A DNA stretch of 64,000 nt from sequence record PP456879.1. One strand, written 5' to 3'. Shown here piece by piece: positions 27,752-31,703 of the stretch (within the stretch, counting starts at the first letter, position 1; each line of letters opens with the position of its first letter). A model generated the notes under the pieces. That model was not told the origin of the DNA. It did no database searches and was given only the letters and a program-made list of their open reading frames with translations. The translations under genes and the position numbers were made by a program.

Positions 27752-30120
27752 TATACTACTTCCTCAAGTTCGATTTTCATCAGTCCAGTGGTGTTGGATA
27801 CAGCATTTGCTGAGTCACAGTTATACCACTTATTGCCATCCTTGATGGTGTAGGTGTCAACTTGATTTGCATCGTCCGCCTTATAAGTGAAGTTTAAGCT
27901 ACCAGTAGAACCTTTAGATAGGTTACTGCAACGTAGTTTACCAGTATTGGTTACTTCAGTACCAATATCAGTTTCACGGTTCGGCCAAGCAGCCACACTT
28001 AGAGTGCGGAATACAAATCCACCTAGTACGTAAGTACCACCATTTACACTATTAGCTTCAACACCAGCTAAACCTTTTAGAACCACACTGTTAAAATCGT
28101 AGGTTCCTTTAGGATCATCGTCATGTACTAGTAATGCACGTGTCCATACCTTACCAGTGGCATCAGATTTCCAATCCTCAGTAGCCCACTTACCGCCAGG
28201 CGCATTCATGGCCGGAGCTGCACTTAGTTTCTGAGTAGAGGTTAAAGTAATGACATGACTTTGTACTTGGGTTCCAAAGTTACCACCTGAACGAAGGCGA
28301 GCAGCAGGGTAGGTAACCGTCGCAGTAGGTACCGCATTTGCAATAGCTACAACAGCAGTAGCCGTAGCTACACTACCATTAGCTGCACGTTTAGCAGTAA
28401 TTAATAGGTTATTAGTGCTGTCGTTATAAGTACCAGACTTATAAGTAACTACCTTAGCAATTTCTGCTTCATTTGCACTGGTTATAGTGAGCTGATCATT
28501 TGGTGAGGAATAAACCACACTATCAGCATTAGATACTGTATTGGCTACAGTAGCAGTTTCACCTACTTTAATAGCACTTTGACCAGACGGATAAGTTACT
28601 TGACCAATATTAACAACTGGGCGAAGATCGTTTAACTGCATGGTGTTAATTTTATCTTCGGAACCAGTATCACTGGAAGTAAACCATTCTGACCATGACC
28701 CAGTTGATTTCTGAACACGTACACGGAAACCATATGCCTTAGTAGTATTACCACGATCAGCTACGTAAAGACCAGTAACCTCTAGTTCTTTAGTAGGTGC
28801 AACAGTGCCACTACTTTCTTTCAGTGCACCAAAGTCAGCAATTTCGTATGCTACTATATTTTCATCAGTAACAACTTTAATTGCAACAAGGTCATCTTCT
28901 TTAAGTTCTGTTTGACCTAACGGATAACCGCCAGTAAATACAGCACTGGTAATATTAGCGGGAGTATCGGCTAATACCTTAGTAGTGAATTTAGCCCCAT
29001 CGGCGTGTTCTACAACAATATCAGCATAACCTTCAGTAGTAGGTGCACCAAGATCAATATCGGCGGTAGCAATCCACATGGGTGGATTAACGCCAGGAGT
29101 TACAACTGCATCTACGTTATTGATTTTAACACTAGGTACATAACTAGAATGTCCAGTTATTGCATCAACGATAACCCGAACATTACTAGTGGTCGATAGG
29201 CATGACTGTACGCTGTGTCCATCAGGGGTACGCACAATACTACCTACGTTCTGACTGGGATCAGTTGCTTGTACATCTTTGACGAATACACCGCCACTAA
29301 TACCTTCATTTTTAGGAAGGTTCTTAAGATCAACGGTCGTTTCATCAACGCCTTCAACAATACGGATATTACCGTCATTCTTGAATGCAATGTAATCAGT
29401 TAAACTACCAATCTGGAATTCACCATTGTCATAAATACGAATTTCAGACTCAGGTAATTCGGGTAATGCACCTTGCGTAGTGGGCGCAGAAGCGTTCTTT
29501 AGATAAGAATAACCTTCTGCTTCCATACGACCTTGTTCCATCATACGCTGAGGTATTTTATCACCAGCAGTTAAGTCGTCTTGATTTAGACGCTTATCAA
29601 ACAGGAAAGCAAAGTTATGGAAAGCAGCGTTGGATGATAATCCACCATTCTTGCCAGTTACACGCAGTACATCTTTAACTGTGTAACCTTGTTGATTTAA
29701 GAGCGACTGGAGTAGTTCAGCAGTCATGGTTGCATGCAGTGATGTTAACCATTCCTGTTCAGTACCTTGGAAACCGTTTTCCACAGCTACTTCATATGCA
29801 CTCTTACCAGCATCACCTTTAAGGGATGCTATAAACTCTTCTTCAGTACCAACGAAACCTAGATCGACTGCGATTTGATAAGAAGATTTACCTTTAAGCG
29901 AATCAAGCCATTCGGTTTCAGTTCCCTGGAAACCATTTTTAACGGCAATCTCGTACGCACTAAGACCGGGTGCTCCAGTCTGTAGTTTTGACAGCAGAAA
30001 CTTATAGTTATCGACTTGACCAGCTGCATCGGTATGAATTAATTCAATATACTCGCTATCGTTAAGAGTAGCTAGATCCGGCAGTTGACTGATCTTGCCT
30101 TTGTCTGTAGCATTTGCCAT
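27751..30120 (-). CDS. Fibre/structural protein (phiKZ gp145-like)
   Basis: 789 aa; N-terminal KISQLP motif, three SAYEIAVxNGFxGTExEWLxSL repeats, beta-rich C-terminus. Confidence 0.8.
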   Translation of the reverse strand: MANATDKGKISQLPDLATLNDSEYIELIHTDAAGQVDNYKFLLSKLQTGAPGLSAYEIAVKNGFQGTETEWLDSLKGKSSYQIAVDLGFVGTEEEFIASLKGDAGKSAYEVAVENGFQGTEQEWLTSLHATMTAELLQSLLNQQGYTVKDVLRVTGKNGGLSSNAAFHNFAFLFDKRLNQDDLTAGDKIPQRMMEQGRMEAEGYSYLKNASAPTTQGALPELPESEIRIYDNGEFQIGSLTDYIAFKNDGNIRIVEGVDETTVDLKNLPKNEGISGGVFVKDVQATDPSQNVGSIVRTPDGHSVQSCLSTTSNVRVIVDAITGHSSYVPSVKINNVDAVVTPGVNPPMWIATADIDLGAPTTEGYADIVVEHADGAKFTTKVLADTPANITSAVFTGGYPLGQTELKEDDLVAIKVVTDENIVAYEIADFGALKESSGTVAPTKELEVTGLYVADRGNTTKAYGFRVRVQKSTGSWSEWFTSSDTGSEDKINTMQLNDLRPVVNIGQVTYPSGQSAIKVGETATVANTVSNADSVVYSSPNDQLTITSANEAEIAKVVTYKSGTYNDSTNNLLITAKRAANGSVATATAVVAIANAVPTATVTYPAARLRSGGNFGTQVQSHVITLTSTQKLSAAPAMNAPGGKWATEDWKSDATGKVWTRALLVHDDDPKGTYDFNSVVLKGLAGVEANSVNGGTYVLGGFVFRTLSVAAWPNRETDIGTEVTNTGKLRCSNLSKGSTGSLNFTYKADDANQVDTYTIKDGNKWYNCDSANAVSNTTGLMKIELEEVV

Positions 30121-30222
30121 TTTTATTTCCTTGCTGTATAAGAAACACTAACATGTTAGTCTTTCGAAGAAGACTCATACAGTAATGTACTATTGCTAAT
30201 GAGTAATATTTTAACAACATAA

Positions 30223-30242
30223 GAGAGTCCCGAAGGACTCTC
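30223..30242 (-). terminator. Hairpin terminator (cUUCGg) after the endolysin gene
   Basis: GAGAGTCC-cgaa-GGACTCTC. Confidence 0.8.
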
Positions 30243-30325
30243 AAAAAGTTACATTGACACAAGATGTGGTTTATCATGAGGGGAAGTTTCACATGATACC
30301 ATAGACTCCATTCTATTGCTACATC

Positions 30326-31108
30326 TTATTTTCTATGTGCTGCAACTTTACCATCCATTAGGTTATAAACTTCTTGAATGGTTTTAGGTGCCCCATCTTT
30401 GTTATAAAAAATAGATGGGTTTGCCTGAGCTTCTTTTGGGAAATGGGTAGCAGCTAATTCATTCTGGCCAGTGGTCAGGAAACGACGGGCTGCACCAGGC
30501 CCAAAGAAGTGAGCTAAATAAAGATCAGTATCAGTTGGTTCACGTTTAAGGACAGGACGAAGAATATTCATATTCTCTTTAATTAGTTCGGCACCCATTA
30601 AAGCACTTATACGTGGATCTTTACGTAATGCCCCAGTTGGATCAGTAAGTACGCCATACTTCATGCCATAATTTTCAATCATTGTTTTCCATGTTCCAGT
30701 AAGGAATTGGAACCAACCAGTAGCTGATGAAGTCTTAGCTTTTATTTCGTAATCGAATGCTGATTCAATAGAAGCAAATGTTAGTAGCAACTGGCTACGA
30801 ACGCCAGTAGCATTTTCTACTGCATTCATAACTGGAGTTGCAGCTGCACGTGATTTATTTGCAGTTGGCATAGGGATAGTTTTATAAGGAATAGGTGGAG
30901 AATATTTACTGAATAATTCAGCCCAAGTATTCTTACCTACAATACCATCACTATCTAGACAATTATCTTTTTGAAATTTAACTACCTGATTAAAGGTGTT
31001 ATTTCCAAAAATACCATCTGGCTTTCCAACATCATAGCCACATAAATTTAAGAGTGTCTGGAGTTGACATACCTCATCACCCCTATCGCCTTTGCGTAAT
31101 ACTTTCAT
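30326..31108 (-). CDS. gp144: Modular endolysin: peptidoglycan-binding domain plus lytic transglycosylase (KZ144)
   Basis: 260 aa, essentially the KZ144 sequence as I recall it; DGIFG/DGIVG PG-binding repeats, catalytic [11 protein letters not shown]. Confidence 0.95.
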
Positions 31109-31169
31109 GATATAACCTCTACATATTAACCCAGTATGAACCCTGGGTTAGGTTCATTGAGGGTATTAC

Positions 31170-31703
31170 TTAACTTTCTAGATAACGGATTTGACCATTT
31201 TCTAGATAACGTGCTGCACCATTCTCTAATAGTCGGATAGTATCTGACGTATCATCAATACGTTGGATTAGTATATTACATTCACCATAGTAAGCATAGC
31301 TACTCGACATAGCTACTATCGTGTATGGAACAACATCCGTAGTTGCATTGATTGGTGTTGTATCAAATGAAACATCATCTGGACCAAGCTTCCAACCTCG
31401 TGAACGGTTAATTTCTTCAGCAATTGCTTTAGGTGTTAAAGTACCAACTATCTTAAGGATAGATCCTTCACCAATAGCACGTGGATCAGCAAAATCTAAC
31501 CGACGGTAAGTTAACATGTACTTAATGTCAGTAGTGATGTCGATCATTTCAATAAATGTACGTCCAGGCTCAATCGTGGTTGGACTAAAAAACATATCTT
31601 CAAATGTAACTGTTTCTGGTTTGAAGTTTATTTTTAAATCATCCCGCGCAAGTTTTACTAGCGCATTCCTCGATGCCATGTCATACGGAAAGATATCCTG
31701 CAT
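31170..31703 (-). CDS. Virion structural protein with C-terminal RxLENG repeats (phiKZ gp143-like)
   Basis: 177 aa; LTYRRLDF motif; ends RLLENGAARYLENGQIRYLES. Confidence 0.75.
   Translation of the reverse strand: MQDIFPYDMASRNALVKLARDDLKINFKPETVTFEDMFFSPTTIEPGRTFIEMIDITTDIKYMLTYRRLDFADPRAIGEGSILKIVGTLTPKAIAEEINRSRGWKLGPDDVSFDTTPINATTDVVPYTIVAMSSSYAYYGECNILIQRIDDTSDTIRLLENGAARYLENGQIRYLES

Follow-up and report, generated by a model that had tools for sequence, protein, structure and literature searches.

Why would a phage encode the same short repeated peptide both at the end of a virion protein and beyond the stop codon of its major capsid gene? The question is raised by a 64-kb stretch of DNA from sequence record PP456879.1 (64,000 nucleotides; hereafter the window), which represents the reverse strand of phiKZ or a near-identical strain. 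The virion protein gp143 ends here in three units, R-L-L-E-N-G, R-Y-L-E-N-G and R-Y-L-E-S, at an 8-residue spacing, and an earlier note on this sequence had remarked that the same three-unit tail, which we call the array, recurs past the stop codon of gp120, the major capsid protein, and that gp145, a fiber gene two genes downstream of gp143, starts with a KISQLP segment. We confirmed this observation: six-frame translation of the window recovered the pattern R-x-L-E-[ND]-G at just two sites, the gp143 tail and an in-frame extension of the capsid gene, and tblastn found exactly two array places in each phiKZ genome. Of all 3456 peptides in the six-frame translation of the window, gp143 gave the best alignment with the capsid extension (score 63, with a runner-up at 35), and none of 200 shuffles scored as high. 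The extension carries no annotated feature in any record that we examined. The interval to which the note had been attached covers gp143, the endolysin gp144 and the start of gp145, and the capsid copy of the array lies 25 kb away. We propose, with odds that we place only somewhat above even, that the array is a portable docking tag for trimeric fibers that carry a KISxL-type N-terminal domain, and that it would be displayed on gp143 and, by stop-codon readthrough, on capsid subunits.

The evidence for readthrough comes from the 3' ends of the capsid gene in 12 distinct phages of the phiKZ clade, which represent Phikzvirus, Miltoncavirus, Pawinskivirus, Phabiovirus, Serwervirus, Tepukevirus, Noxifervirus and four IMG/VR contigs and reach down to 61% capsid identity. 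In all 12 the capsid stop codon is TGA, and in all 12 the frame beyond it remains open for 26-30 codons and keeps the three units; the other two frames are interrupted irregularly. TGA is a minority stop codon in these genomes, closing 5 of 38 neighboring genes in one count, that of phiKZ, and 6 of 35 in another (13-17%). At about 70% nucleotide identity among the 12 lineages, the key residues of the extension are conserved, and its third codon positions are the most variable (identities of 0.575, 0.665 and 0.458 at the three positions; ratio of nonsynonymous to synonymous variation, pN/pS, 0.55), compared with 0.82, 0.88 and 0.60 (pN/pS 0.30) in the last 80 capsid codons. There is no in-frame start codon within the extension, and an intrinsic terminator hairpin only about 10 nt past its TAA places it inside the capsid mRNA. 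RNAalifold detected no conserved structure in the region past the capsid stop (-8.9 kcal/mol, without covariation support), and no tRNA gene, suppressor or otherwise, was found in the window, to which the scan was confined. The capsid gene combines a weak, conserved stop codon with an in-frame extension conserved as protein, two marks of readthrough of the Qbeta A1 type, and UGA readthrough is the simplest reading of these sequences; the readthrough that the earlier note had assumed is backed by the conservation of the TGA, the open frame and the array, from which we infer that the extension is translated. The databases used in published proteomic searches would lack the extension, the structural papers that we consulted do not mention it, and our literature search found no description of capsid readthrough in these phages or of the array.

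Two further features of this region deserve mention. In HPP-Temi, a 47-residue "hypothetical protein" is annotated over the capsid stop (L005:679-822) in a frame that differs from the conserved extension, and is probably a spurious gene call. Behind the hairpin that closes the extension, and behind a second terminator hairpin at 30223-30242, also on the reverse strand, all relatives (L001-L014) have a conserved T-T-A-T-G-type motif, and hairpin and motif together may form a combined terminator and phage promoter.

Outside the phiKZ clade, the pattern changes. The array is not family-wide in Chimalliviridae; the capsid extensions of other members copy instead the linker of their own DUF7941 proteins, a family to which the N-terminal domain of gp143 is also related. 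That relation was not known to the earlier note, and it supplies a serious rival for the partner of the array. The Goslar capsid gene ends in TGA followed by a 28-codon in-frame peptide (L028:33356-33439:-). Within 40 kb, this peptide aligns best with the tail of gp23, which is short and the most abundant of the DUF7941 proteins of that phage; the two share seven identical residues in a row (score 55 vs 34; 0 of 200 shuffles). In PhiEaH1 an 18-codon extension best matches the short DUF7941 protein of the same phage (4 of 200 shuffles), and the capsid genes of PCH45 and Moabite likewise carry TGA and an in-frame peptide with the linker motif, the best match of the PCH45 peptide being a DUF7941 protein, though not significant on its own. 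These matches were ranked by within-genome Smith-Waterman alignment, which replaced a weak 17-column hidden Markov model (HMM) of the generic DUF7941 linker that gave its own training sequences only 7-13 bits and placed the Goslar extension 12th of 5132 peptides. The stop codon divides the capsid genes cleanly: TGA closes all 16 of those with an extension and TAA all eight of those without one. Capsid 3' ends of Eowyn, FBKp24, DT01, RSL2 and pVa-21 show no clear motif, and other genomes were covered in part. For the Goslar-type extensions, a DUF7941 N-terminal domain as partner is the best reading. In LucasX, SA002 and RAY (L015, L035 and L016), the capsid gene ends in TAA and a DUF7941-linker-like motif lies inside the normal C-terminus; every capsid subunit of these phages may display a docking peptide.

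The array also has a fixed place in gp143. Against the Pfam family DUF7941 (PF25613), the window copy of gp143 scores 18.3 bits, below the gathering cut-off of 27, and its homologues P0044 and P0035 exceed that cut-off at 32.3 and 29.4 bits; gp127, gp126 and Goslar gp23 score 98, 39 and 72 bits, respectively. PHROG, like Pfam, places gp143 near DUF7941. In an AlphaFold2 (AF2) model of gp143 (predicted local distance difference test, pLDDT, 90), the N-terminal domain is predicted to adopt the DUF7941 fold, and the sole significant match of the model in the PDB is chain 0 of 9xqd, from the phiKZ outer baseplate (E 7.7e-7, template modeling (TM) score 0.69). The three-unit tail closes all 46 of 46 gp143 homologues (33-99% identity), and five of the 15 columns that are invariant across 44 homologues fall within it (R157, E160, R165, E168 and R173). 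It begins at about position 156 of the DUF7941 profile, which is the position of the linker. The Goslar virion paper counts phiKZ gp126, gp127 and gp143 among the DUF7941 proteins, proposes head-to-tail chaining through a disordered linker that docks on the next N-terminal domain, and reports AlphaFold 3 (AF3) models and gp22 filaments (PMC13742148). A 316-residue open reading frame (ORF) at 13978-14928 on the reverse strand has a weak DUF7941-like N-terminal domain (our own HMM, E 2.5e-5; no Pfam match) with a Pro-Asp repeat linker behind it; it may encode a fourth paralogue in phiKZ, absent from the list in that paper. The holin gp142 is encoded at 31786-32220 on the reverse strand; gp143 has been reported to bind the N-terminal domain of this holin. 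The gp142 homologue of 201phi2-1 (gp227; L025) was found by mass spectrometry to be a virion protein, which is odd for a holin.

What the array might bind is suggested by its occurrence in other phages. A profile search with the gp143 family over 1.84 billion proteins returned three kinds of unexpected architecture: array-only proteins with three or four separate triplets, two-module proteins with the array at the end, and P0224, in which the array lies between a DUF7941 N-terminal domain and a further 280-residue region. When we surveyed IMG/VR with a degenerate DNA pattern, it matched 70 loci, with fewer than one expected by chance. Seventeen distinct array ORFs encode DUF7941 proteins on jumbo contigs, mostly with KISxL fibers nearby. 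In 35 of the 42 other ORFs, which are not from chimalliviruses, the array lies at most three residues from the ORF end, and in 17 of the 38 loci whose downstream sequence is long enough, a KISxL-type domain opens the next ORF, 2-15 nt further on; 11 of these 17 next ORFs pass the KISxL HMM at E<1e-3, compared with 39 of 3364 ORFs overall. Of 61 runs of units, 60 are triplets and none is longer, a count whose constancy fits a trimeric partner, as the earlier note had supposed for a trimeric fiber. Among the array carriers are tail proteins, one baseplate-like protein and the tail tube protein of a siphovirus, and some carriers are tiny, with 45-65 residues and their own start codon.

Two loci link the array to KISxL proteins without a DUF7941 gene: no DUF7941 was found at either. 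On an 18-kb small-phage contig (L041), an array protein lies three genes past a fiber with a KISQL start, and in relatives with other fibers its counterpart has different N-terminal repeats and no array. In XacN1, a giant protein contains two arrays and a KISxL protein follows two genes on. A KISxL HMM trained without L041 and XacN1 matched both (E 1e-6 and 1e-5) and gave no match in control loci without arrays, about 185 kb in total. The co-occurrence of array and KISxL fiber that the earlier note wished to see within Chimalliviridae is supported, and it reaches well beyond that family, to non-jumbo loci, XacN1 and the L041 group; within the family, the pattern is not universal. The note had also described such repeats as often standing immediately before a KISxL domain within one polypeptide; the position just before the domain is borne out, but the repeats end the preceding protein, and none of the 119 proteins that share the gp145 N-terminal region contains a tandem array.

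Several of these loci show features of their own. The coiled-coil protein that carries the L041 array is encoded upstream of the scaffold and capsid genes, and across L041 and L043-L046 its N-terminal short repeats vary with the fiber cassette; only L041, whose member of the family stands beside a KISQL fiber, has arrays. At L064, L067, L083, L088, L090, L115 and L117, the array forms the end of a siphovirus tail tube protein of 165 residues (Pfam Phage_tail_2), a second high-copy structural protein that carries the tag. At L103:4139-4198, a 34-codon array frame without a start codon is overlapped by the end of a 135-residue ORF in another frame, and a KITDL-type domain opens the gene that follows; this array could be a tag added by frameshifting.

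The array profile had no match in the PDB or Pfam, and the KISxL profile likewise had none in either. A word-index search with gp145 residues 1-48 returned only gp145 itself, and tblastn of the gp145 N-terminal domain stayed within the phiKZ clade, so that the wider KISxL family was reached via the arrays. A KISxL gene lies close downstream of the array gene in phiKZ, where it is gp145, and in six relatives. The phiKZ virion atlas (PMC13250141) assigns no position to either gp145 or gp146. In the solved capsids, the C-termini of the capsid protein lie at the capsomer axis; the C-terminal arms form the central bundle of the hexon and contact the outer protein gp244 at pentons (PMC11297242), so an extension at this terminus would emerge at the capsomer axis. 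The C-terminus of gp145 (which closes with an E-L-E-E-V/A-V/I motif) and the N-terminus of gp146 are conserved across genera (L023, L026 and L027), and the two genes overlap at 27751, which suggests that the two proteins join end to end.

We propose the following model on these grounds. The array would bind the short KISxL-type N-terminal domain of a trimeric fiber, one unit to each fiber subunit. Phages of the phiKZ clade would display the tag on gp143, whose DUF7941 N-terminal domain resembles the outer-baseplate kind, and again on the subset of capsid subunits produced by readthrough of the weak UGA of gp120, where it would be exposed on the outside of the capsid. Fibers of the gp145 type, probably carrying gp146, would dock at both the gp143 and the capsid sites, and the rate of readthrough would set the number of fibers on the capsid. 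The array would probably serve as a plug that fastens host-recognition fibers to the virion, capsid included. More broadly, readthrough of a UGA in chimallivirus capsid genes, or in some members a constitutive C-terminus, may display a peptide that the phage's own appendages recognize. For phages of the phiKZ clade this peptide would be the array, and for Goslar, PCH45, PhiEaH1 and Moabite the DUF7941 linker.

The most serious alternative is that the partner of the tag is itself a DUF7941 N-terminal domain, that of gp143, gp126 or gp127. The array would then be the phiKZ-clade version of the linker and would dock head to tail by beta-strand addition, and the readthrough tail would seed chains of DUF7941 proteins on the capsid. 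We favored this reading at first, given the TGA/TAA split and the linker copies in other capsid genes, and demoted it on the adjacency of arrays and KISxL genes; for the phiKZ clade it is alive, though we now consider it unlikely. It is consistent with the AF3 models and gp22 filaments cited above, with the array of P0224 and of the two-module proteins, and with the AF2 model of gp143, in which the tail is predicted at a pLDDT of 75-85 with periodic beta-bridges. Against it, arrays are common in phages without a nearby DUF7941 gene and there adjoin KISxL genes, gp127 retains an ordinary linker, and the fixed count of three units would go unexplained. The moderate confidence and regular pattern of the same modeled tail would also suit an array that folds on itself or self-associates, for example as a beta-meander that caps a protein or plugs the hexon axis, where the capsid C-terminal arms meet (PMC11297242), and that recruits nothing. 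We regard this as improbable, since it leaves unexplained the KISxL adjacency, the diversity of carriers and the proteins with three or four separate triplets. Least probable, in our estimate, is that the capsid extension is not translated at all, being either the decaying remnant of a longer C-terminus or a segment conserved as RNA, and that the gp143 tail matters only for lysis timing. The linker-like motifs within the normal capsid C-termini of LucasX, SA002 and RAY are compatible with such a history, in that the stop codon could be secondary; but in 12 lineages the frame has stayed open and retained its key residues, with variation at third positions, no conserved RNA fold was found, the TGA/TAA split is perfect, and the layout recurs in four further lineages, whose extensions are unrelated in sequence.

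A number of observations weigh against the docking-tag model that we prefer. The tail of gp143 sits exactly at the DUF7941 linker position, which elsewhere is predicted to dock DUF7941 N-terminal domains, and the capsid extensions of four other chimalliviruses copy their own DUF7941 linkers, so that by analogy the phiKZ tag could bind a DUF7941 N-terminal domain instead. Transposon sequencing (TnSeq) found gp143 dispensable and gp145 and gp146 essential (bioRxiv 10.1101/2025.11.23.690004), so gp143 cannot be the only anchor of the fibers, and gp143 has been reported to modulate lysis timing via the holin gp142 (PMC12894885), which speaks for the reading in which its tail matters only there. 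About half of the small-phage array loci have no KISxL gene immediately downstream, and co-occurrence inside Chimalliviridae is confounded by common descent. Finally, no RNA element that would stimulate readthrough was found past the capsid stop.

The proposed arrangement has precedents in part. In Qbeta, a single-stranded RNA phage, the coat protein is extended through a leaky UGA to give A1, with a 196-residue folded extension. The phiKZ capsid gene is similar in having a UGA at the end of a major coat gene and an in-frame extension, and in that a minority of subunits would carry an extra surface element used in infection; it differs in belonging to a double-stranded DNA (dsDNA) jumbo phage and in encoding a putative docking peptide of 26-30 residues. 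Programmed frameshifting yields the capsid proteins 10A and 10B of T7 and T3 and adds Ig-like domains to capsid or tail tube proteins. These systems likewise recode the 3' end of a high-copy structural gene to make a sub-stoichiometric, C-terminally extended form, whereas phiKZ would use stop-codon readthrough and would add a short repeat common to another virion protein. The docking proposed for Goslar gp22 and gp23 and phiKZ gp126 and gp127 shares with our model the N-domain fold of gp143 and the position of its tail; in contrast, the filaments described there are anchored to the baseplate only, the capsid stop and extension are not mentioned (PMC13742148), and the tail of the phiKZ clade is another motif that also occurs without DUF7941. 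As in T7, where the N-terminal domain of gp17 attaches to gp11 and gp12, a short N-terminal domain would fix a trimeric fiber, and as in SpyTag/SpyCatcher the logic would be that of a modular tag and socket. We found no relation to these systems in sequence or solved structure, none in sequence to any solved chain, and no sign of covalent, isopeptide-type chemistry.

Table 1. Features of the window discussed in the text (positions count from the first letter of the window)
Feature	Coordinates	Strand	Remarks
gp143	31170..31703	-	177 residues; DUF7941 N-terminal domain and C-terminal tag; virion protein
C-terminal three-unit array (tag) of gp143	31173..31235	-	
gp144, endolysin (transglycosylase)	30326..31108	-	Between the tag gene and the fiber gene
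gp145, fiber protein	27751..30120	-	789 residues
KISxL-type N-terminal domain of gp145	29977..30120	-	Proposed socket
gp146, collagen-like fiber protein	24470..27751	-	Start overlaps the gp145 stop; N-terminus different from that of gp145
gp120, major capsid protein	56879..59122	-	747 residues; TGA at 56879-56881; Pfam PhiKZ_MCP, 759 bits
In-frame 26-codon extension past the capsid TGA	56801..56878	-	5-residue spacer and three-unit array; TAA at 56798-56800
Intrinsic terminator hairpin	56767..56790	-	About 10 nt past the stop of the extension
gp127	49247-50119	+	DUF7941 paralogue; linker of the general type, without array
gp126	50128-50571	+	DUF7941 paralogue

As phiKZ and Goslar are model nucleus-forming phages whose virions have recently been solved, and the capsid extension is still unannotated in every record examined, its translation would bear on several aspects of their biology. 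If translated, the extension would explain where the unplaced fibers gp145 and gp146 are attached, and how some 2500 DUF7941 proteins per Goslar virion can be attached without micrometer-long filaments growing from six baseplate sites, and it would provide a clear example of a structural gene in a dsDNA phage whose stop codon is read through. The pairing of array and KISxL domain would offer an annotation rule for fiber-attachment sites and adaptors across many phages. We suggest, tentatively and with confidence that falls a little short of even, that programmed UGA readthrough across Chimalliviridae places a few docking peptides on the capsid surface and would thereby make the head, and not only the baseplate, a platform for host recognition, one that carries KISxL fibers in the phiKZ clade and, in phages of the Goslar type, chains of DUF7941 proteins, and that the array and the KISxL domain may form a widespread, previously undescribed plug and socket through which interchangeable trimeric fibers are mounted on tail tubes, baseplates, adaptors and capsids.

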